DNA of 64,000 bases, from NCBI RefSeq assembly GCF_000150275.1, contig NW_002060950.1, positions 1,042,106 to 1,106,105 on the forward strand. Reading direction: 5' to 3'. The notes under the pieces were generated by a model, which was not told where the DNA came from, did not search any database, and saw only the letters and a list, made by a program, of their open reading frames with translations. A program made the position numbers and the translations under genes. Origin of the DNA: Trichoplax adhaerens. Taxonomy: Eukaryota; Animalia; Placozoa. Shown one piece after another: positions 39,082 through 61,400 of this stretch (positions are counted from its first letter, which is position 1; each line of letters starts with the position of its first letter).

Positions 39082-42000
39082 TTATTCACTCATAGTCAAC
39101 ATAGGATAAAAGATAAATTGCAATAGAAAATGGAATACCATTAACGTTGTATTATCCTGATATATACTTTGCTTCTTTAATCCTTCAGAATTAATAGATA
39201 TTAATTCAAGGACTGGTGTATCGCCGCCTAAATTGCTCTTTAAGATACCTTTAAAATCGGCTAGCATACCTTGACGTAATTGATAGATTTGTGTAGCAAA
39301 ATCATGCTCAGCTTCTAAAAGGACATCTAATTCATTACCGCGTTGTGGTATTGGCATTTTAGTACGAATTTGAAATTTATAATGATCATTATTATGTAGA
39401 TGACAACCATCTTGACGCCTTAAACGACATATTGGATCATCAGGATTATCACAGGCTGTATACTTTTTACCGAAAACACAAGTTAACCATTGATGTATTA
39501 ACCAGGGTAAACTACTAAACATATCTTGAAATTTATTATCAATATCGACGACTTCAATTGTGTCTATTTCACCCGACCAGGTAACAATTTGATCAGCTAA
39601 TTGGCGACATTGTACTTGAACACGAGCTTGATTACTTGAATGCCAAGCTGGTGGACCGCAATGGGCAACATATTGCGACCATGATATTCTACTATCTTTA
39701 TTCGATGATGGAATATTAGAAATAATAAAAAATAACAATACTAGCCCTAACATCAAGTAAAAGAGACTTTTCTTGCTCATTGTTAACTTGTTATGATGAC
39801 TAGAATTAGCTTTTGCATCTCCTTGTGACAGATTCGATTGATTATCATCATCATCAAGAACTAAACCTTGATCGACCAGTGTCTTAGGTACTGCAGCTGT
39901 TGCAACAACACGAAATAATCGATCTACAATACCACAACGAAATAATAATCGGATAATCATACCAAATACCATACCAAGTAATGTAAATGCAGCCAACCAA
40001 CCGACAGAACCACGTAATAATCCCGACCAAGTAGAATAACGAAATAGCTCAATCATCAATTGCCACCATGCAATAAATGTTAAGTGAGGTATTAATATTT
40101 GGTGGGTACCTTGCCATTTATGTCGACTAGCCATAGTCACCATGAGACCAGGAAAGATTAAGTGAACACAAGATGCTAAGCTAAAATTTAAATGCAGCCC
40201 ACCAATAATTTCAGTTGATAGAAAATTACTTGCAAATAAGGTCAATAACCAACGAAAAGGCAACCATGTTGGTATGCTATCACTGTGAGCTAAAAATGCC
40301 GATAAAATACGCATGATAACAGCCATGATGGCAATATCATTTTGTGATGATAACAAAGCAAATCCAGTCACAACGACACACATTGACATGAGTGCTAATT
40401 CTGGACATGGTAGCCATGATTTATTAGACAGTGCAAAAAACATTAAAGTACTGAAAAGAACGTTAAAAAAGATTAAATAAGGACGAAGGATAAATACTTG
40501 GTCTTGATCTTGTCGGTTAGTATCACTTGTTAGTGTATTGGATTTTATTTGCTTTTGTTGAAATAATTTAGTCCAAATTTGACCGTTTGCTATCATCTTA
40601 CGTTGTTTAAATATCATTAAAGTACAAATTACCAAGACCATAAAGCCAATGAGGAAAAATAAAGGTGGTAATACTGTAAATAATAAAGCTGATGTACAAT
40701 TGGTATAAATGAAGAGTAATACTAAAGTTTGTAATTGTTCGGTGGGTAAAAGCGATTGGAAAAATTCTTCACTATGTTGCGAGGCTTTGCCAACAATGAA
40801 GTCTTCTGCAGCAAGAAGAGTTCGTTTAGGATAATCAACCAGTATCTAAATAATTATAACATTTACTTTAATATACTGCTATATAGTAGTTTAAATGTGG
40901 ATGGTCTTTAATTGCCCTGTTTAGTAACTGTTTATCTGTCGTCGTCATTGAGAACTAACAAATCTAATAGTCGTCGTCGTTTTTACCTGGTATTTTCTTA
41001 GCTCTATGCGTTTAAAGCGATGTAGAATAGTCTAACCTTAATGTTATGCATTGTAATGTGCTACTATCCCAGCTTATAATTGCTTTCACTTTATGATACT
41101 TAATCTAGCTGAATTGGCATATCAAGCAATATTCTAATTCAGAGTACAGCACTGTCAATAACGAGGTATATCTGCTTGATGGAATTACAATTGATATAAT
41201 TTCTACTTTTTAATGATCTATGCTGTTTATTTTGAATCTTGATTATGCTTTACGATACACGTATAAATATCTAGTGGAGCATTATTGACTACTTGTAAGG
41301 TTAGCTATTGCTGCAGCATATCTGCATTTGCCAATTTGTTCACAACTTGCAACCCAAAGTGCATATGTAAAATATTAGCATTTATACTAAATCGAAGCTC
41401 TATTACTGCATAAAGCTGCATTTTGTACAATAACTGATTTCTTTCCTACGTTAACTGAAGTATGGGGTAGATATCATCTGTTGATGGAGATCTCTGTTAC
41501 TAAATGGATTATCCATGAGAAATCTATTCTTTAAAGCCTAGCAATAGCGATTTCAAAGTAAAGTATCCTTTAAGAGAACTATTCATCAGAAAATTGCTTT
41601 TAATAGCCTAGCAATAGCTCTCAAAGTAAAGTATCCTTCATTTTTAGGACTGCAAGTATAGAGCTCAAAGTTAGCATAGCTGCAACTTTGAAGTGTTTAT
41701 CGTCTACTGATGGAGATTTCTGCTATCAAGTAGACTGTCAATGGAAAAATTGCCTGACAGAGAAAGAATATACCTTTTTGGATGTCATTTTGATCCTTTC
41801 TAATGGTGGTAACTTGGCAATTTCTTCCCAATCTTCATCAAACATACCTTCATCTTTGTTATCGGACATGATTTCTTCCATTTTTTCCGATTCACTTTCC
41901 TTGGTCATAGCTTTTCGCTGAACTTCTTCCTCAATCGGTAATTTTTCTTTATTGTGGTTGTTTGTAGCTTGATCAAGAAAGACTTCTTCATCTTTTGCTT

Positions 42001-45000
42001 CTTCTGGAGTAGATGGTGTCGATACAGTACTTACTGACGAGACCATTTTCTTATTCTGTTGAACATCTTGTATTAATTTGTGCAACGTTGTGGCTCCTTG
42101 GACCGGTTTCGGTGTCGAATTAGATTGAAGTTTTTTATTGCCAACTAAGAAGGAATCATTTTCATCTTCTTTGGATTGGACATAACGTTCCAAGGCTTTT
42201 CCCATAGCACTTTGCCAGCGTATAGAAGCTTTTCGTCGTACGTGTATTTTATGATTTTCATCTTCATAATCTTGTAACATTTCAGCTGCTTGTTGATTAC
42301 CAGAATCAGAGCTTAGCTTTAACCATTGTAAAGCTTCTTTACGATTCCTTTTAACACCAAATCCTTCAAAGTAAAAATTGGATATTTGCAATTGTGCATC
42401 AGCATCGCCATCTCTTGCTTTCTGTAATTCCTCTTTAAATAGCTGTTTGCTTGTTTTCCTATCCTGTTTACCATCAATAGGATTATCTCCTGGCGTAGCA
42501 GGAACTTTAGGCTGGAAGATATTCTTTAACATCTCGCCCGACGTTGCATTGGATGGATGATTTTGATCTTGTTGACTATCTTTAGCTTGTCGGACAAATT
42601 GACTTAAAATACCACTCTTGTTGACAGCTTGACCTTGTGATTGATTTTCTTCAAGTTTTTTACCAAAGGCTTGCAATACTATGGAAGCCATTTTAGGTGA
42701 TGCTAGTTGCTTGTCTGTAGCAGCAGACAAATCTTCGTCATGCTGATTTATATTTTCATCGTTGAATACATGATTATCCGTTGTGGATGAGTCTGCTTTA
42801 TCCTCTGCTTTATTCTTGGTCGTAGCTTGGTGATGTTCTTCCTTACCGCTGTCATGACTAGTTTGTTGTTGGATTTTAGAAGTTGTATTAGCTTGAATAA
42901 ATTGGCCTAATAGAGAAGCATATTGAGTCGATTTCTGGCTATCATCTTGTGGATGAACTGGGCTTGAATCAGTTGGTATTTCATGATTTTCTAATACTTG
43001 GATTGGTGTATCTTGAGCTTCTTCTTGATGATCTGTCCATTCTGCCGGCTGACTAGCATTTTTAATTTTCAGATACATTTTAGCAATAGCCATGCGTGAT
43101 TTTTTCTCACGATTGGTAGATATAACACACCAAATGACATCGGCTTTATTTTGCCTTGTAATACCAATCCTATCGCGTTGGCATTGCGCTAATAATGATG
43201 TTGCTTCGTTATTGCTTTGCTCTGATGATTTAATCAACCAATGGACACCTTGGATAGGATCTTTCTCAACATGAATACCTTGCAAATAGCATTTACCTAC
43301 AGCTAATTGTGCATGTTGTTGGCCATCTTGAGCATGATGGAAACATTCATCGTAAGAAAAGGATTCATCATGAATATGGTAATGTTTCTTTTCATGACTG
43401 CGTTTTTTCTTGGTCGATGGTGTTTTACTTGGATTACTTTTCCCCTCTATAAGCGTCATTGGATCGTTGTCTTCTTCCTTGTTCTTTTCTTCGTCTAGGT
43501 TATCACCATGATCTGTAACATTATCCTTTCCACCTTGATTGGGTAAGAGTTCGTTCTCCGTAACTTCTTCAATGGCAGTTATAGTTTTACTTTGATCCAA
43601 TTTTAATTCTGTTTGATCATCATCATCATCGTCATGATCATCGAGGTCAGAAATACAATCAAAGCTATCCAAAATCTCTCTTGTCATCCGTTTAGAACGG
43701 TAATTGATATCACTATTTTCCTCGTTTTTCTCTACTGATGTATTGGATTCTTTCGATTGACGACGGCTGGAAGCATATTGCTTGCGCCTTAATTTAGGAG
43801 AAATTTCTGGTGACGTAGCTTGGGGAGTTACGCCTGTACTTAAGGATTCGCTACTTGCATGAATAGGATTCCAATTTAATTTATTATTCTCATTTAGATT
43901 AATAATATGTTTAAGTTTACCCTTTAATACAGTTAAGCGGCGCCTTGCTGCTTCCCTTGATAAAGGATTCTTAATTACATTAGTGTTGGCATTGCTATTA
44001 CTGGCCCTATTAGCATCGTCTCGATGATCATCGATTGGGTTGGATGTTTCACCATCATCACCATCATCATTATTATCGTGATTCTCTTGATCAACTCGTT
44101 CATCAAGTTTAGAATTAGTAGCGGTTAAATCTATTGCTGGATGATCTAGTGGTATTGTCCTAGTGGCGATAGAGTCGGTTTCACTTTTACTTTGATTGGA
44201 TGATGGTAGCATGGAGCCATCGATGCTTTGGATATCTGTTGTTGGTTGCTGGATTGCAGGATCATTTTCTGAGCTTGCATCACTTGTATAACTACTTCTA
44301 TCCTCTGATGTACTATTTCCATCGTTACCTTGTGAAACAACGGTTAAATAACGTTGGGAATCATCTTGGATTTCTTCTTCATATTCTTCATCGATATAAT
44401 CTTCATCCGAGTTATAATCTTCATCATCTTCCTCATCGGTTACCTCTTCAGTAAAAACAAGATATCGACTTGAACGATCAAGAACAGAATTGTTGATGGA
44501 TTGATGACCGATTTCTTCATTATTTCCATCATTAGCAACATCGAAAGAAGCAAATGTTAAAAATGAACTTGTCTCACGATATATTTTACGCTTGATTTCT
44601 TGTTCATGTTGAGATGAAGGATGGTCTATGTCATCAGGATGATCACTGGTGGGTATACTTTGATTAAGATTTAATTCATTTTCTGTAGTATTTTCAGCAA
44701 TCGATTCTACTGGAAGCTTAATAATGCGCCGATGAACTGATTTTTTCCTTCCTCGCTTAATTAAATTAGTGTTGAGTTTATTGCTCTCGTCATGATTGCC
44801 TTTACTGATGACACCTCGAAGGCGAGTTTTTAAATCAGGAAAACGTTTACGAAGAAATACCTTGCTCGAGCTCTCCATGGTAGGTTCTACAGCTGCCGAG
44901 CTGGAATCAATATTCTGATTTGCAAAGGTATCTTGATGTACAGTAAGTGGTGTTTGCATTTCCTCAGAGGTTTGATTTGGCTTGATATTTTCTGTCGTAG

Positions 45001-48000
45001 GGCTACCTTTCTCTTCAGTAGCTGTTGTCTCAATTGGAAATGAAGTCGAGTTCGATCTCTTGATGGAGTCGATTTGTGGTTGATGAGGATCCTTATTATT
45101 GGCATGGACTTCTTCATTTCTTGCATAGCTATTACCCGTTGTGCTTGCACTACTATTACGCCTTCGTTTCATGGCGAGAGAGGATGAATTTGCGCTGGAT
45201 GCTATGCTATTATCGCGTGATATTGAATCTTTCTTCTCCTTGGAATAATGAAGCCTTTTTTTCATCTTTAATTTATCTAATACAAAACTACCTCGACGGT
45301 GGTTTACGGTAGCAACCTCAGCAAAGAGTTCATTATCATCGATAATTTGGAAGCCACTTTCTGTTGGTTTACGTCTGATGGCTTTATGTTCATCTTGGCC
45401 TACAGCTTGGCTATCTGCTTCATCTTCTTGTTTTTCATCATTGGTAGTCTGTGATTCTTTATCTTTATCGTCAGTATGGATAAGCTGAGAACGATTATCC
45501 ATAAAGACTTCATCGGGTTGTTGAATATTGGCTACGGAGTTTTCATCCTCTTCTGTACCTGGTTGATGACTATCAGATGTTGAGTTTTCGTCTTCTTTTG
45601 CAGCTGGTTGTTGAACAGCAGACATTGAATTGGCATCATTTTCTGTAACCGATTGATGAATATTGGTTATCAAGTTGTTTTCTGCAGCAAGCTGATGAAT
45701 ATTCGACTTTGAATTTGTATCGTCTTCTCCATCTTCTGATTTTTTACTATTATTTGCAACGGAAGAAGATACTGAAGAGGATTGGATATTCTCTTCTTGA
45801 GCGGATAAACGATTAGCAGATTCCTTTTCAACTGTTGCAGGTAATTGCTTGGAATTATTGACATCTTGCCCATTTTCCTGATCGTTCGATGGCGTTAAAA
45901 ATGTATTAAAGCTCCAAATGGAGCTTGGATTGGTTTCTACGCTATGGAATGGACGTAATTTTTCTAAATCATACAAGGTCAAGATGGGCGTATGATTGGG
46001 CTCGTCCTTTTCCTCTTCAACACCATGGTAGCTATTGGACTGCTTGGTTTCTGCAGAAAGCCTTCGTTCCTGGTGATCGGCATCTTGATCATCTCCTGTT
46101 TGATGTGTTTCCATGCCACTATCAACGCTTGTACACTCCGCTAAACTTTCTGTAATTGAAGTTTGACTTTGGCGTGCTGATGTAGTTTTAGTATCGGCAT
46201 CTTTATCCTTATTTTCTTCCTTTATTTCTTGATTACCAGCTCGACCAGAGATTAAATCAACGCATATAAAATCTTCTGATTCAAATTCCACCGTATCTTG
46301 ACGTTTATTGGATAGTTTCTTGATAGAATCTAAATTTTTCTTCATGGATTTTCCACGCGATCCGGCTACTTTACTTTTAATACTTGATTTAACTCTTCCT
46401 TGATAGAATGATCTTAACAAATTTCCATCGGGTGTATTAACATCTTGGCCGTTTAATGGCATCTGTTGGCTCTCTGTTGTTAATGTATTATCAGTTTCCT
46501 GTCTATCTTTCTCACTATTGGAATATGGATCATTCTCATCTTGAGATTCTACATTTTCACAGTTACTGCTATTATCAGATAGTTGTGAACTTTTAGCCTT
46601 TTGAATATCGGTCATGTTGTCATGATCTCCAATGGTATGAGAATGACCTATCGAGGCTTCCTGTTCTTGGTTCTCGTCATGATTTTCTTCATGGCTCACG
46701 TTCTGACTTTTGCCATGATTCTCGTCGTGATTCTCGTCATGATTCTCGTCTGATTGCTTGGATTGTACCAAATTGGAGGTTGGATTGATATCATACTGAC
46801 TTTCATGATAGGAGTTCAATTTCTCCGAGTTATATCCTTGATGAATACCGTCTTCATGTCTAATTTGCTGGCTAGACAGGCTGGTTTCTTTCTTATATTC
46901 TTCCTGTTGATTGACTGCCAACTGATTAAATCCTTTCTGGCTCTCATTTTCAATCTCTTTATTCGGTTGAGGAATACCATCATCTTGGCTAGGATGAATT
47001 AGACTTGGAGCAGTTACTGGTGAAGCAGATGTTTCATCTTCCAATTCGAAAGGATTTCCAGGTTTATGATCTTGAACTTCGTTTGGATTACTATCATTAC
47101 TGTCGGAATGGTAAGAATGCGTGATTGAAATATTAGAGCCAAGGATAATTTGATTATGAAGAGAACTTGATGCTAGACTTCGGCGAAATTTTAGCTTATC
47201 TAAATTGGTAAAAGATCGACCTCGGTGTGGAATAGTTGGGCGTTCAATATGGCTTAAATCATTGGCGCTATTGGAAAGTTTTTCAGCTTGGATATCGAGC
47301 GATTGTTCCGACAAGCTTGATGTAGAGCCAGCAGCACTTCCTGATTGGCCATGGTAAGAGTGCTGATGCAATGTACTATTCCATTCTAGGCTGTTAGTAG
47401 ATGGATTTCGTGAAGAATTTCGAGACGAGCGAGGTGTTGTATCCACATTCATTGAGCTACGACTTAATTGTTTCTTGCTTTGTCGCCATTTACTCACTAC
47501 CGATGAAACTTTATATGCTACACGAGACTGCATTTTATTAGGAGAGGATTGATATTCGCTATTATCAGCTAAGCTTGCTTCATCATTATCGTCGCTACCA
47601 AATGCTACATATAAGAAATCGTCTAAATCGTCGGTTTCTAGCAAACTAGTTGCACCTTGATTGAAATTTTGGATGCTTTTTTCATCTTGATCATCTGCAG
47701 AGTTGGCTTGGGTATCTTCTTCATCCTCTTCTATAAGAAATGGATTACCCGGGATACTAATACTGTCATCATCGTCATCGTCATCGTCATCGAGCCCTTC
47801 AAATGGATTTCTCGGTGGTAGATCTGCAAATGGATTTTCCGATGGTTCATTTTGTGCACTATTCAGATCATCGCTATCATGCCTTTGGCCATTCTGTTGT
47901 CCAGGACTAAGAAATGGATTACCACGATTTGGACTAATGGAGTTATTTTCTACATGATTATTTTCAAACGGATTCTGCGATTGCTGACTATCGACCGTTG

Positions 48001-48842
48001 GCTGAGAATCTTTTCCATCATCAGCAGGGATATTGCTCTGACTATTATCGATCGTGAATTGCATTCCATTTGGACTTGGACTATTATTTCGTGCTAATTT
48101 ATAAGCATCAGCAATTTCTTTCAATGATAATACTTCACCCGATGGGGCACCTCTAGTTATCTCTTTCTGATTGATGGTGGTAGTCGATGCTAAAGCAATA
48201 TCATCATCATCTGCAATTTTCTTGGCATGCTTTAATCGATGTAATAGTTTCCTTTCTTGGCTTTTTTGCTTCTTTATACGATCGCTAGTATTAACACACC
48301 AAATAACTTTAGCTCGATTTTCTGAAGTTATACCTACAATAAAAATAGAATTAAATGAGCCATTGAAGAATCTATCTACTTATTGAAGAGGCTATGCTGA
48401 GTCCGACTAGCTCAAAATAGATTCATTAAGGTAAATGACCTTTATTTCTTCGCAAACATTCTGATAAGATGAATGTTGCATCTTTATTGCATTCTTCTGA
48501 TGCTTTAATAAGCCACTCTACGCCGGTAACTAGATTTTTCTTGACATACTTTCCTGATAGGTAGAATTTACCCATAGTTAACTGAGCGTCGACATCTCTG
48601 TCAAGAGCCTGATAGAGAACCTGTTTATAATAGGATTTGGATTGTTCGCCAAAATCAAACTGTATGCTGCTATCTTGGTTTTCGCCATCAGAATTTTCAC
48701 TTTTCTTGGCTTCTTCATCAGCTTGTTTAGAATCAACTTCATCCTGCTGATCATTGCCTTGGTTGTCTTTTTTGACGATAATTTTTTGACGCCATTTCTT
48801 GACGGCAGCTTTCGATTTTGCTACTCTTTGTGCCGCTTTCAT
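39082..48842 (-). CDS. WFS1: Wolframin (WFS1) homolog with a greatly expanded N-terminus; 3 coding exons, about 2908 aa
   Basis: Exons 48842-48440, 48333-41774 (6560 nt) and 40845-39082 are GT-AG and total 8727 nt in frame. Junction RRNKG/ITSEN matches WFS1 RRGITSEN. The last exon has MVLVICTLMIF, PCPELA, LIPHL..WWQL, GLLRGSVG and the luminal SWSQYVAHCGPPAWHSSNQARVQVQCRQL..VTWSG..V..IDN. An in-frame TAA upstream of ATG 48842 makes this the start. Confidence 0.88.
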
Positions 48843-55195: not shown

Positions 55196-56266
55196 TTATT
55201 CACTTTTAATGGTAGATTTTTGCTTGATTAAATCTCCCTGTCTTTGATGACCATTATTATCTTGATCATATTGATCCAGTAAATTAATTTCTTTCGATCT
55301 TAATCGTAAACCTGCACGGTTATTGTTGGAGTGATTCTGTTGAGATATTGTTTCTACTAGTATATCTTCTTCTGTATTCATTATTTCAGTTGTATCAATT
55401 AGGCGGTGATTCGATTCTTTCTGTTGTTGCTTGTGATGATTTTCCTTCGTCAATTTGTCAATAATAGTTTTATTATCTAATTGATATTTTTCCTGTTGTT
55501 TAGTTAAGTGATTCTGAATTTGATCATGCTTTACGGGTTGCTCACTACGAAATTGTTGAGCAATTTGCAATAGAGATAATCCACTACGTCTTTCTTTGCC
55601 ATTAGATTGATCGCTTCCGTCTTGAATTTTATTTTCAGTCACTGCAGATTTTGATTGATTATCACTGCTACCTGTTATCCGTTTTAGGAATACTTCTTCC
55701 CTTTTAGCAAGATCTTTTAAGCGATTGCTAGTGTTAATACACCATAAGACCTCTTTTACATTACTATCATCGATGCCAATTTGATTTTCATAACATTGCT
55801 TTAGTAACTGAGTGGCCGGATCATATTGAGCTTTGGATGCTTGCATTAGCCATGTAATGGCTAATTTTAAATTTTGTTCAACTAGTTGGCCATCTAAAAA
55901 ATAACGAGCTACTTGAAGTTGTGATGCCCTATCGCCACATTGAGCATGATATAAGCAGTGACTAAAATCCTTTTCTTGTTGATATTCCAATTCAAGATTT
56001 CCTTCTAGGCACATTCGACAGTATGTAATTCCATCACTTTCATGTTGTTTTATCGTTGGTAAGAAATTGGCATACAAAGACTGAGAGGATAAACTATTGG
56101 TACCATAACTATCGTACTGTTGATGATTTAATCTTTCCGATGGGCTGTTTCTCTTGATTCTCATTCTACTTTGGCTATTTTGGTTAGATGATGGATGATG
56201 AATTAAGACATCATCCTCTTGAAAGTAGTCTTCTTCGTCTTCGATATCTATTTCTACCTGATCCAT
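55196..56266 (-). CDS. Stand-alone protein with one wolframin-type N-terminal Sel1-like module in low-complexity flanks, no TM segment (about 356 aa)
   Basis: A splice acceptor (ttctattcag, exon starting 56369) is followed by an in-frame TGA, so the first ATG is 56266 (MDQVEIDIEDEED). Module FSHCLYHAQCGDRASQLQVARYFLDGQLVEQNLKLAITWLMQASKAQYDPATQLLKQCYENQIGIDDSNVKEVLWCINTSNRLK aligns with the WFS1 modules downstream. Confidence 0.7.
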   Translation of the reverse strand: MDQVEIDIEDEEDYFQEDDVLIHHPSSNQNSQSRMRIKRNSPSERLNHQQYDSYGTNSLSSQSLYANFLPTIKQHESDGITYCRMCLEGNLELEYQQEKDFSHCLYHAQCGDRASQLQVARYFLDGQLVEQNLKLAITWLMQASKAQYDPATQLLKQCYENQIGIDDSNVKEVLWCINTSNRLKDLAKREEVFLKRITGSSDNQSKSAVTENKIQDGSDQSNGKERRSGLSLLQIAQQFRSEQPVKHDQIQNHLTKQQEKYQLDNKTIIDKLTKENHHKQQQKESNHRLIDTTEIMNTEEDILVETISQQNHSNNNRAGLRLRSKEINLLDQYDQDNNGHQRQGDLIKQKSTIKSE

Positions 56267-58402
56267 GTTATAGCTAGCGCTGTCGTAATAATCAATTCTT
56301 GTCTTAGAGAGAAGATGGATAAAAGTGCAGATCGGTAACAATAATATCGTTGGAATATCCAATCAGTACCTGAATAGAATACTATCCATAAAAATACTCG
56401 TAAAGCAAATAATTCATACAGATTTTAAGCCTTTAGCAAACAGTTAGGTTTTGATATTACTTTACTAAGGCTATCGCGCATACTAGCAGCGATAAAACAT
56501 ACGGTGCAAGCTGTTTATTCCAGTATAACAAAATCAAGGAAAGGCTATTTATTTTTGACCATCTGGTTTGTGTAAGTGCTATATAATGCTATTTCTCGAT
56601 CAGATAATATTTATAATGGAAATATAGAGTCAAGTTACATCATAATGCTCTGTCACAACCGAGATTGTAACACAAGAATTAAACGGGATTCTTTCCTCTA
56701 AAGTAGACTTAACTATCTAAGCAACTAACTCTAAGCACTCTTTAATCAACCAAACTTAGATTCGAGTCTTAGACGATAGATTACTCACGTTAAGGATCAA
56801 AACTTTATTCTAGAAGCTATTTTATTAAAATGTCCGATTGAACGCACAACTTACAATTACGACTAAATCACGTCTGATCATCATCAATCATAATAAGCTG
56901 TGAGATAAGGTTCTTATTGTTAGCTTAGATTCGTGGGATATTTATATAAATTGATGACTAAAGCACTTTTGATCATATAGGGAATTGCTGTAACTCCCAA
57001 ATAAAATTCCCATTCTTAAGCCAAAAATAATAGCCAATTTGTATAAAACTTATAGTTGGAAAGAAAGCACTTTGGATCATCGTCAATCTTGGCTACAAGG
57101 TTAAGTTTCTATTATAATATAGTTGGCTAATAGCAATAGGAAAATTTGTACTCAGCTCGTAGCTAAAACACTTTTGGATCATTACGAATCACTATCAGAT
57201 CTTTGCTGATCAATTTCATGAAATACTATTTCATAAATATTTTTAATTTCCAAATTTCGTTGTGCGATTAAGTTTATTACATTGAGGCTGTTCAAGATAT
57301 AAGTGATAAATATGGATGGATGATGGCTATTTAAGTATAATTTATAAAGTTATTAGATATAAAAGTAACATTCATCTTTGGATCACCTATTTAGTTAATC
57401 CACTGTAGGTAAGCTTTATAAGCACTGATATTGATGCTTACGATTATACAGTATACTATGCAATCTTGCTATTGAAGATTTTATAATACTTGCTGGATTA
57501 GCTTTGGTATGCTCATTTAGGTCGTCAAATAATTTTTTTAGGGCAATATATTTTAAGATTCTTCATTTCAGATAAAACATCGGAATTATTGCAATTTCAT
57601 TTAGTTAAAGATACTAAGGCGTTTTCTTATAAGTCTCCAATACATCATAGTGATTAAATTAAATAATTAGTGATTAATTCAAACAGTATTATGAGCAGGA
57701 AGATCAGAATAGAAATCTCAACTAAAAGGCCGTAATAAAGCGATTGAAGTTGTTAAGACTTATTTAGGCATTGAAAAATGAAGACATTAATGCATTAACG
57801 ACTAAGCATATTATTGTTCATACACGAGAGTACCCATTTAAAGCAATTAAAATCAAATTTTGAATTAGCATGATCTGAATGATGAGAAGTATAAATAAAT
57901 TCTTTAATTGACTACTAGAATAGTATATACTGTATGTATAGCATAGCAGCATACTGATCAAACTATCTGCATATAAATATTAACGTATACAAAAAATAAA
58001 TATCGGATCCAATCAGGAAATGCGCCAATCTTGCAATAGCATCGAATTAGATTCTACAATAATTAATTATCACTGGTTTCATGATTGAGTTAAAAGTTAA
58101 TTTAAGTCAGCAATCGAGAGAACTGCAAGAAAGTAGCGTTTTATACCATTTAAATAGAATTGATATGTAATTTGCCTACTCTAAACATACTTCCATTCTA
58201 TACTAAGTTATTGCAAGCTTATTAATGTTATATCCTTTCTTGTCGTTTTGATAACTACCAAATTCAATAATTTAAAATCATTAGTATAAAGAAATTTTAT
58301 CGTAAATTAAATTAAGTAAATAATAATAATAATCCATGTCAAAATAAATTAATGCTGTTCAACAAATTAGTTAGTGTTTTTGCATTTTTATCTTATAGGT
58401 AA

Positions 58403-61400
58403 TTAAATTAAAATAAACTTAGTTTTACAATTAATTTCTTTTAATTTCTCTTGCATTTGTGATAACTCAATTTCTTGCAATCGCTTACGACGGACTTTTT
58501 TCGATACAAAAGCATTGGAGAAGCGGTTGCGGAACGAATCTCGAAATTGGCTTAATGATTCCGATGAAAACGATGTCATGATACCTTGATTCTTAGCAGT
58601 AATAACTCCGCCACTGTAAGTATTATTGTTGCTATCGTCGTCACTATTGGAAGACACTTTTTGATTCTCATTATCAGCTGGTACATTTTTCTTCTTTCCA
58701 TTATTATCTTGATCCTTTTCGTGACTAATATCATCATTATCCGATGTATTTCGAGATGATTCTGAACAGCTAGCGCACTTAAACCCAACCGCAATAAAAT
58801 CATCACGAATAATATCCGTTAATTTTTTGTATTTACCGCAGATTGTACATGTACTATTAACATCGAGCTCATCATTGAGATCGGATAAGCTTTCTGGTTC
58901 CATTGCATTGTTATCAATAACTTCAAAATCGCTCAAATTGTTATCACTATCGTTAATCTTAATTGCTGGTTGATGATAATTAGCTACTAATTGATTACTG
59001 CCAGGTCGAATTTTACTCAAGCGTACACAACTGTAGTCTTGGTTGATACTTGCAGTCCATGAGTAACGATTTTTGTTAATAATTTTATGCGATTTTCTAT
59101 CATGATTGGCCGATCCTTCACTATCTTCATCTTCGCTATCATCGGAATCAATAGGCATCGTAAGATCTGGGCATGATGGTATTTTTCTTAAATCGATGTA
59201 TTTATCACGTAGGCTATCCATGCGACTAGATGAATCGCAAAGGAAGTATACCTCATTTTTGGAATCAATGGATAGAGATCGGGTTGATGAGGTAAGTCGC
59301 CTTAATTTACTATGAGATTGCCATATTTGATTACGAGATTTTAATGTATCCCTATCAGAGCCAGTGCTACCTTCGCTACATTCGTTATCGCTACTGTTGT
59401 TATTAGTAAATTCGTAGGCGTCCAACGTTGAATTAGGCTCTGTGGCGATTACAGTAGGTGAGCTAACGGATAATTTAATATCTGGAATGCTATTTGCTGC
59501 TGTTGTTTCTACTGTTGCAATATGGTTAGGGTTTGATACTTTTTTTAGCTGAAATCTTTTTCGCCATTGACTGATAAATCGACCTGATAAAGGTCCGCTA
59601 TTGCTTGAATTAGTTGTCGCTGTCGTAGTTGTAGTATTGCTAACTGTAGCGTTGGGTTTGATGGGTTTGATGACTTTCGAAAACCAAGCATTTGCACGAG
59701 ACATGAATGATAAATCAACTGCATCGTTAGGATCTTTGCTTTTAATTCTGAATCATCAAAAAAGATTAAAAATACCGCAATTATCAAAATAGTGTAATAT
59801 TGAATGTATTATATTACAATATACTTCTATTAGGGAATATCACCTTTCTAAGCGTTTTTTAATGACTGCCACTGGGTTTTTCTTGACTAGACCACAAGTG
59901 CACACAATAGCATCAGCAATAGCTATCATACGATCTGTAAATGATTCAGCCCCATATAGACATTTATCAGTAATGAAACTAAATATATTAACCTTAAGTT
60001 GGTATAATCACGTAAGATAACCTGTAGAATCTTCAATGGTCTTTGAGTGAAGATTTCTCAAGGTATAAAAATATCCAGTACAATTAGCATGGATATAATG
60101 AAGGCGTAAGAATATAAATTTCGATTTAAACAACGATGCAATCATGCCTATAGTTTAGAAATATTATATTAGTTATAATTGTCATCAATTATAGTGATCG
60201 CTATGATCTTCTTTTAATAGCTGGAGTTGCACAGTACATATTTGATCAAATTATGACACAACGTTGCTGGACAGCAATTAATTATTCGACTGCTGTAGAA
60301 ATATGAAAACCGCTGATGTAACTTTATGATAAATTAAGATATACGGTACTACTATACGTATATCAATTATAAATTTTAAAGTGAAATAGAATCAACTTAC
60401 CAATTTCTATTCTTTCAACATCATCCAATAAAGTGCTTCTAAACGTTGTTATACGCTCATTTTCATCATCATAACTTTGAAATAATAAGATACGGTAGTG
60501 GTATTAAATTTGGTTTACCAAAATATATGGAAATAACTTCTTTCAAGAAATGTATTATATGTTTATGGGATAAATATAAATATAAAAGTACAGTATACTT
60601 TACTAAGCATTAATTACTCAGCTGGCACAGAATTTTCTATGGAGCAAATGATACCTGGCAAGATATATTGCTTTGGTTGTTAATAACAGCGCTACATCTT
60701 CGTCATGGCCGGTGTTTGAGCTAAATTTTATTACCCATAAATTCATATGACACGTTATTATTCCATAGTAATAACACCTACTTCATAAAAAATTATGTAA
60801 TAATAAAGGAACACCATTGACTAACCAAAAATGCGGGTTAACTAACATCCAACCAGCAACATGTTCCTCGTCTTCAGGAACAATTAAACGTTGGCAATGA
60901 GATATTACATTCGCCTCTGATTCTTCCCGTTGAGCCGACCATTCATCTTCATTTTTCAACTGTTGCCTAATCTTTCGCTTTAAGTTCAGTAACTGCAACT
61001 CTTCTGTAACAGGATTACCTAACATGATATCTGAATAGTTTTGAAGATGAAGGGAATATGAGTATATCGGCTATTTATCTTTGTCATTGTGCATTAAGAG
61101 TAGTAAGATTTTAACATTGTAGTTATCCTAATATCATTAAATACCAATGACAGTCTGCCTATACGTATCTCTGAATCGGTTCAAATAGTACCTAACAAAA
61201 AATTTTGTTATTAATGAATAAATTCAATCGGTAACTACTTCATTAATAGTAGTAAAGTAAGTATAACATTTATCTTTAAAGTATACCGATTTGCTGAGTT
61301 GTATCCATCTTTCATGACACCTTTGACGTTTCTTTCGCCTGTTCTTGTATAATCTCCCTAAATAAATATGTTATACGTCAGCTCCTGATATCATTCATTG

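Follow-up and report, generated by a model that had tools for sequence, protein, structure and literature searches.

The minus strand of the stretch analysed here, 64,000 nucleotides (nt) of the Trichoplax adhaerens genome (assembly GCF_000150275.1, contig NW_002060950.1, positions 1,042,106 to 1,106,105; hereafter the window, in whose coordinates positions are given), carries between 48842 and 39082 a gene for a wolframin with an exceptionally long N-terminal part bearing three Sel1-like modules (M1 to M3). Three open stretches, corresponding to three exons, make up this gene:

48440..48842, minus strand: exon 1, 403 nt, with its ATG at 48842 and donor AAG/GT
48334..48439, minus strand: intron 1, 106 nt, phase 1, GT..AG, acceptor TTGTAG/, splitting the Gly codon of GITSEN
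41774..48333, minus strand: exon 2, 6560 nt, 2186 codons, open throughout, donor AAG/GTATAT, ending in phase 0
40846..41773, minus strand: intron 2, 928 nt, phase 0, donor AAG/GTATAT, acceptor TTTAG/, read directly
39082..40845, minus strand: exon 3, 587 codons plus stop, specifying the pre-membrane motif YPKRT, the membrane region and the WC-rich and WCOB domains

The splice sites agree with the consensus, their phases match (1, then 0), and the predicted spliced product totals 134+1+2186+587 = 2908 amino acids (aa). The original prediction, made without database searches, had described a three-exon gene of this product size lying mostly on one 6.56-kb exon, and splice sites, phases and codon sum confirm it. 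Exon 1 contributes the start codon, a basic-Trp motif (KKWRQK), an acidic stretch and the first 63 residues of M1; its last base (g) and the first bases of exon 2 (gt) together specify the Gly of GITSEN. Exon 2 continues with the rest of M1, spacer 1 (~1620 aa), M2, spacer 2 (~200 aa), M3 and a pre-membrane linker of 120–150 aa. The N-terminus ahead of the membrane part comes to 2321 aa, where about 2300 had been claimed, and contains neither a hydrophobic span nor a signal-like segment. Searches were made exon by exon.

Exon 3 specifies a canonical membrane and luminal part:

~40725-39712, minus strand: multi-pass membrane region with at least eight hydrophobic spans
39681-39391, minus strand: WC-rich domain (Pfam)
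39387-39091, minus strand: WCOB OB-fold domain (Pfam)

The WC-rich domain (PF20053) is matched over the full length of the profile by exon 3 aa 389-485 [95.3 bits, cut-off 24, E 3.2e-27], and the WCOB domain (PF19913) by aa 487-585 [47.1 bits, cut-off 23.4, E 3.5e-12]. A six-frame search of the genome (105.63 Mb in 1414 contigs, ~33 % G+C) revealed a single WC-rich locus [99.6 bits]. On the strength of the two domains and of this sole locus the identification as wolframin stands. With exon 3 as query, HMMER recovered 217 homologues in an exhaustive search; the best of them align over 93-99 % of the exon, and phmmer comparison of its residues 3-550 with the wolframins of Owenia, Ptychodera, Lingula, Haliotis and lamprey gave E values of 1e-47 to 1e-70. 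Near full-length alignment extends to wolframins of annelids, molluscs, a brachiopod, a hemichordate, arthropods and vertebrates. A search of the PDB found no solved wolframin structure. Location in the endoplasmic reticulum (ER), with a cytosolic N-terminus and a luminal C-terminus, is assumed by homology with human WFS1 (PMC7016017, PMC8632972).

A contig from a related placozoan (L004, Logan SRR30664517) carries a counterpart of exon 3 that is 80.7 % identical in nucleotides and has kept the acceptor, and ends inside intron 2. A number of predicted proteins of ~600 aa (P0002, P0004, P0005, P0007, P0008, P0011, P0017, P0020 and P0028; P0002 and P0004 are ENA records) start within a few residues of the exon 3 start. 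It would seem from this that other animals share the large exon for the membrane and luminal parts, together with its 5' boundary.

A profile of the Sel1-like module was built from the N-terminal modules of 49 wolframins of other animals, placozoans being excluded. It has exactly three matches in the wolframin gene and none elsewhere in it:

48218..48629, minus strand: M1 (48629-48441 + 48331-48218), Sel1 repeat, WSLR-type hairpin and helix, split by intron 1
43037..43357, minus strand: M2, complete and intronless (GITRQN..VIWCV..AIAKMYLKI), exon 2 aa 1660-1762, 87.6 bits
42140..42439, minus strand: M3, degenerate, profile match 42439-42215, exon 2 aa 1967-2039, profile positions 7-83 (its first two thirds only), 20.0 bits

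These are the three modules of the original prediction, whose coordinates agree with ours within a few dozen bases. A fourth candidate at exon 2 aa 704-742 was rejected [-2.2 bits]. M1 scores 45.2 bits over exon 1 aa 72-134 (profile 6-71) and 12.1 bits over exon 2 aa 1-38 (profile 73-110). On the profile one piece ends at position 71 and the other begins at 73, so that they meet exactly at intron 1, and the first junction is therefore validated by homology. Against Pfam Sel1 (PF08238, cut-off 30.7 bits) the exon 1 part of M1 remains below threshold [22.4 bits, E 1.7e-4], M2 reaches 32.1 bits, M3 31.9 bits and the whole of exon 2 52.9 bits. Pfam WSLR (PF20023) stays under its cut-off of 27 bits in these copies (14 bits, and 19.1 bits for the hairpin of M2). 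In M3 the Sel1 repeat is retained and the GIT..N..WC half is gone. Pairwise local alignments between the modules have z-scores of 14-26 against shuffles. By sequence, M2 is the most canonical copy and M3 the degenerate one.

AlphaFold2, given an alignment of 34 sequences, models M2 as six helices with a predicted local distance difference test score (pLDDT) above 90 over the helices and of 87 overall. Its top Foldseek matches are all Sel1-repeat proteins at probability 1.00, with E values of only 0.02-0.1. By sequence the best PDB match is 6ok3 [7e-26], and the best PDB matches are again all Sel1-repeat proteins. For M3 the model shows three short helices and behind them a single long one (pLDDT 88-98 as far as residue 100), with low confidence over the next 120 residues. 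Structure prediction, which had been proposed as a check, has M2 folding confidently as a Sel1-repeat unit. The motifs read earlier do stand, namely GITSEN in M1 and AIAKMYLKI in M2. The accompanying idea that functions were partitioned between a copy with GITSEN and a copy with the MYxK helix is not supported: M2 possesses both GITRQN and AIAKMYLKI, and M1 has GITSEN together with an aligned helix, ERKLLHRLKH.

The whole 6.56-kb exon is protein-coding. It holds no stop codon where 151 would be expected from base composition (log10 P ~ -68); the other five frames contain 101-308 stops over the same length, and the longest open run in 200 shuffles of the exon was 177 codons. In relative synonymous codon usage it resembles three other long coding stretches in the window (r = 0.93), which its two remaining sense frames do not (r = 0.01 and 0.25). 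The coding log-likelihood of frame 0 is positive in all 28 overlapping windows of 150 codons, and frames 1 and 2 are negative. One might nonetheless suppose that exon 2 is not one exon, and that in-frame internal introns remove much of the spacer to leave a protein far below 2908 aa: an intronless exon of 6.56 kb is unusual, and the gene's two recognised introns are short. We regard this as most improbable, since none of the 150-codon windows loses the coding signal, or the order of G+C content by codon position (GC1 > GC2 > GC3) that obtains in nearly all of them, and since even a 300-nt intron should hold about seven stops. Because stops are absent, the coding signal is present in every window and the exon has no assembly gaps, an unrecognised intron is very unlikely.

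The composition of exon 2 (S 12.4, D 9.1, E 8.9, N 8.4, K 7.2 and Q 7.0 %) and a hydrophobic fraction of 0.12-0.28 outside the modules, with no hydrophobic span, agree with the S/N/Q/D/E-rich spacers described in the original prediction. Pfam at E up to 1 found no domain in the spacers, and the ESM Atlas gave no usable match for them. When compared by blastp with the soluble paralogues, the Owenia giant and the neighbouring 433-aa frame (all described below), only the modules match. At 45537-45663 exon 2 contains an in-frame 45-nt tandem repeat (2.8 copies, 69 % match) encoding a 15-residue acidic/polar unit, and further short in-frame repeats occur at 46671-46755 and 44381-44437. The in-frame repeats are signs of spacer growth by slippage.

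Just after M1, spacer 1 carries the following cluster:

47048..47974, minus strand: NPF cluster, six NPF motifs, most with acidic residues behind them, candidate ligands of EH domains

The six motifs fall within exon 2 aa 120-428, where 0.16 would be expected, a 37-fold enrichment; the maximum in 5000 composition shuffles was three. NPF followed by acidic residues is the context described for EH domains of the EHD type. The same genome has at least six EH-domain loci above the Pfam cut-off. NPF-rich ligands of EH domains such as MICAL-L1, Rabenosyn-5, syndapin and epsin likewise possess several NPF motifs in a disordered region, many of them followed by acidic residues. There the anchor is endosomal, whereas here it would be a predicted ER membrane protein, and the motifs are putative binding sites. 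We know of no wolframin that carries NPF motifs of this kind.

A 16-aa basic motif, RGxSF..LDKLK[FM][KR][KR], recurs 640 aa apart in exon 2. Its copies, HRGRSFTNLDKLKFRR and HRRGSFVLDKLKMKKR, lie at ~47245-47180 and ~45310-45240 (exon 2 aa 364-385 and 1008-1030), each presenting a serine of the basophilic-kinase type and then an amphipathic basic stretch. They are possible phospho-regulated or calmodulin/14-3-3-type sites.

The position of intron 1 indicates which copy is the original one. The splice donor of human WFS1 intron 4 is c.460+1 (PMC5363171), which puts the end of the human exon one base into codon 154. The Gly of GITSENE is placed at this codon by the published residue numbers 158-ENE and 169-ETD (PMC8632972) together with vertebrate sequences (GIT.ENE...LS.ETD), the human numbering being that of the papers and not of a human sequence analysed here. 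Intron 1 lies in the same Gly codon and the same phase (1) as human intron 4, and so is older than the placozoan-bilaterian split; since this position is common to both, the module was part of the gene before that split. M1 is also preceded by the basic-Trp motif KKWRQK, which resembles the GRKQW at the start of many other wolframins. From the ancestral intron position and the preceding motif we infer that M1 is the orthologue of the canonical module, and by these sequence criteria it is the ancestral copy. M2 and both soluble paralogues have no intron at the GIT position.

In a tree of 40 modules, with M1 represented by its exon 1 part only, M1 and M2 pair (92/50), M3 joins them (81/67) and the two soluble copies form a pair of their own (97/95). 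A single placozoan module clade is not rejected by the approximately unbiased test (p-AU 0.31). Identities between the copies are 28-44 % in the first block, hardly above those to other animals, so the duplications are either old or fast-evolving. M3 occupies by position the canonical site beside the membrane, and by sequence it is the most decayed copy. The basic-Trp motif itself recurs, as KKWRQK at 48800-48783 (exon 1 aa 15-20) and as VSKWRQSKK at 47497-47462 (exon 2 aa 279-290), and resembles the GRKQW at the extreme N-terminus of many arthropod wolframins and the SSWRQRRRG of one soluble paralogue. The copy within exon 2 could be the relic of a formerly separate N-terminus.

For comparison with other wolframins, the best 150 of the 217 homologues were used, 43 of which include a module as well as the beginning of the membrane region. 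Exactly one module was found in 43/43, so that multi-module N-termini are not common among the wolframins tested. From the end of the module to the position equivalent to the start of exon 3 there are 57-138 residues in these proteins; in the present gene ~122-147 aa separate M3 from exon 3, a distance near the canonical one. The N-terminus measures 179-511 aa (median 235), with one exception of 1846 aa in Owenia. A survey of N-terminal length among non-bilaterians had been proposed; the lengths obtained show that giant size is exceptional, and the named sources are all bilaterian, no non-bilaterian wolframin besides this one having been identified among the proteins whose source name was looked up.

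The gene shares with the wolframin family (Pfam WSLR PF20023, WEF-hand PF19914, WC-rich PF20053 and WCOB PF19913; architecture in PMC7016017) the homologous membrane, cysteine-rich and OB-fold parts, an N-terminal Sel1-like module with GIT..N..V.WC, the phase-1 intron in the Gly of GITSEN and the N-terminal basic-Trp motif. It differs in possessing three modules versus one, an N-terminus of ~2320 aa versus the median of 235, and an NPF cluster, and in the undetected EF-hand. Here, furthermore, the membrane-adjacent M3 is degenerate and the canonical copy is ~2150 aa away. Sel1-like repeat proteins at large (SEL1L/Hrd3, Helicobacter HcpB/HcpC, Legionella LpnE/LceB and Oxalobacter SLR proteins) have the same alpha/alpha fold and sequence signature. 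Theirs are long contiguous arrays, whereas the wolframin modules are isolated two-repeat units with a family-specific third hairpin, set on long disordered linkers.

The exceptional Owenia fusiformis protein (CAH1790355.1, P0015, 2495 aa), annotated as a wolframin paralogue, is likewise a giant with a canonical membrane/luminal part, and has a 1670-aa S/E/D/K/P-rich N-terminal extension without Pfam domains. Unlike the Trichoplax protein it has a single, canonically placed module, and the extension lies upstream of this module and not between modules. It lacks an NPF cluster (there is one DPF) and is a paralogue beside normal-size copies, from an unverified gene model. Blastp detected no similarity between its extension and the spacers of the window. 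Four copies of a motif like SF..L..AWKDLKRGMSPKP are present in the extension, and the gene shares its 39.8-Mb contig with a paralogue of normal size (P0001). Giant size is not unique to Trichoplax, Owenia being a second and independent case; the three-module architecture is without parallel in this sample.

Two soluble relatives of the module are encoded in the same genome. The first, at 55196-56362 on the minus strand and ~6.3 kb upstream, is an intronless frame with a complete module and then a polar tail, ending in a stop; its module scores 69.8 bits against the animal profile and 30.2 bits against WSLR, above the Pfam cut-off. The second (L003 409-1989, minus strand, equivalent to G000:C1411 around 3414058-3414156) is on another contig and is a 526-aa frame with an N-terminal SSWRQRRRG, a module [72.4 bits against the animal profile, WSLR 32 bits] and an S/N/Q/E-rich tail. 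They share the ~100-aa module with the wolframin, in each case with a polar tail behind it, and like M2 they are intronless at GIT; they differ in having no membrane or luminal part and in forming their own well-supported pair in the module tree. Further upstream, at 58403-59704 (minus strand), there is a 433-aa S/N/D-rich frame without a Pfam match; it contains a CxxC..CxxC pair and, close to its beginning, a basic-Trp motif (SQWRKRFQLKK). The frame at 55196-56362 was considered as a 5' exon of the wolframin gene and rejected: it has its own stop, it is followed by ~6.3 kb of AT-rich sequence without a frame of 120 codons or more (the longest are 53-86 aa), and exon 1 possesses its own ATG and a family-typical N-terminus.

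The existence of soluble genes with a module and a polar tail (55196-56362 and L003) lends some colour to a different account, in which the locus makes two products. A wolframin of ~840-893 aa with M3 only would arise from a promoter inside exon 2, and exons 1 and 2 would mainly specify a separate long soluble module protein, reading through to the stop at 41738 or only rarely joined to exon 3. Translation from the in-frame Met codons 1881 and 1934 of exon 2 would yield proteins of 893 and 840 aa, the normal size of a wolframin, M3 alone is at the canonical distance from the membrane region, and the frame continues only 12 codons past the donor at 41774 to that stop. We think this account unlikely. 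M3 is the most degenerate copy, without the WSLR half which every other wolframin keeps; M1 has the ancestral intron and the N-terminal basic-Trp motif, which places the canonical N-terminus in exon 1; and the donor at 41774 follows the consensus closely and has the phase required. As an alternative or an addition to the long protein, a normal-size isoform from an internal promoter is nevertheless live.

The reading we prefer, and consider probable, is that this is the sole wolframin orthologue of this placozoan, with a canonical membrane/luminal part, the N-terminus of which has grown in the lineage from ~235 to ~2320 aa into a multivalent ER-anchored adaptor. Duplication of the module within the gene and growth of the disordered linkers would have given rise to a multivalent arm that is anchored in the ER and extends into the cytosol. 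Human WFS1 binds SEC24, a subunit of COPII, with its cytosolic N-terminal segment, via diacidic signals in and just after GITSENE (PMC8632972), and the Sel1-like region overlaps the mapped calmodulin-binding region (PMC7016017). The Trichoplax modules might offer up to three binding surfaces like the human region of SEC24 and calmodulin contact, and the cluster of six NPF motifs followed by acidic residues could recruit EH-domain proteins. The protein would then act as a long-reach adaptor from the ER membrane to the trafficking or membrane-remodelling machinery, while the luminal part would keep the ordinary wolframin role. For such a tether or scaffold role, already proposed in the original prediction, the six-NPF cluster is the best support.

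One could accept the gene model and still take the expansion to be largely neutral, slippage and duplication having inflated the linker, M2 and M3 being decaying duplicates and the arm having no tether role. The spacers without detectable domain or relative, the short in-frame tandem repeats inside exon 2, the plain degeneracy of M3 and the comparable polar extension that arose independently in the Owenia paralogue would all suit this. It is a serious competitor, though we find it doubtful. M2 is not decaying, being the best match to the family profile and confidently folded; the NPF motifs are both clustered and enriched; the 16-aa basic motif recurs at a distance; and codon usage is host-like throughout exon 2.

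Several observations weigh against the adaptor reading or the gene model beneath it. The frame upstream of an essential membrane domain stays open even if the spacer is functionless. Support in the module tree is weak, and the human diacidic signals for SEC24 are not strictly kept in M1 (ENR) or M2 (QNK). The predicted junction of exons 2 and 3 rests on splice consensus, phase, the canonical spacing of M3 and the dependence of exon 3 on a coding exon ahead of it, which follows from its frame opening only at the acceptor and its first ATG lying inside the membrane region. Across this junction the tail of exon 2 scores 2.4 bits against the canonical pre-membrane segment, which is inside the shuffle range and not significant. 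The resemblance by eye of LPPLERIK..KK/ILVDYP to the canonical LP..K..KYP was discounted as support for the junction, the similarity being not significant. A word search with the whole of exon 2 for an orthologue gave no match, to which we attach little weight, as we do to the lack of a match in a pattern scan of JGI metagenomes for the giant exon. A word search with M2-M3 gave only generic Sel1-repeat proteins (one from Thiotrichales and three unnamed Logan sequences). The EF-hand (PF19914), for which a profile scan had been proposed, was not detected by Pfam on the relevant segments even at E values as high as 10; a profile of the linker in 43 wolframins finds nothing past the module tail, and the AlphaFold2 model from M3 to the end of the exon is of low confidence (pLDDT ~50). 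As Pfam also misses the domain in the Owenia proteins and detects it weakly in Haliotis, the missing match may reflect divergence.

A bolder proposal, to which we give distinctly little credence, is that the Sel1-like module is an autonomous, portable ligand-binding unit amplified in placozoans (three in cis and at least two soluble). The giant wolframin would then be a long-reach ER tether, with the NPF cluster engaging EHD/Eps15-type machinery and the modules engaging a conserved wolframin partner. If this were true, ER export or calcium handling would be coupled to endocytic or recycling membranes, and the gigantism that an annelid evolved independently would speak for repeated selection for reach.

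What lies at this locus is a real gene with a real, well-delimited triplication of a module on an exceptionally long disordered arm, and a lineage-specific variant of a known protein: an arm of ~10x the usual length with three helical modules in place of one. Domain duplication and linker expansion are a common mode of protein evolution, and the surprise for the specialist is moderate. The gene is among the few wolframins outside bilaterians in this survey. The cytosolic module of wolframin harbours Wolfram-syndrome mutations and the reported contact regions for SEC24 and calmodulin. A module in triplicate on one protein, together with soluble single-module proteins, provides material for a natural dissection in which the copies differ, one being canonical, one intronless but intact and one decaying. 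The residues fixed in all intact copies, and the partners of the soluble copies, could point to a conserved ligand of the wolframin module.

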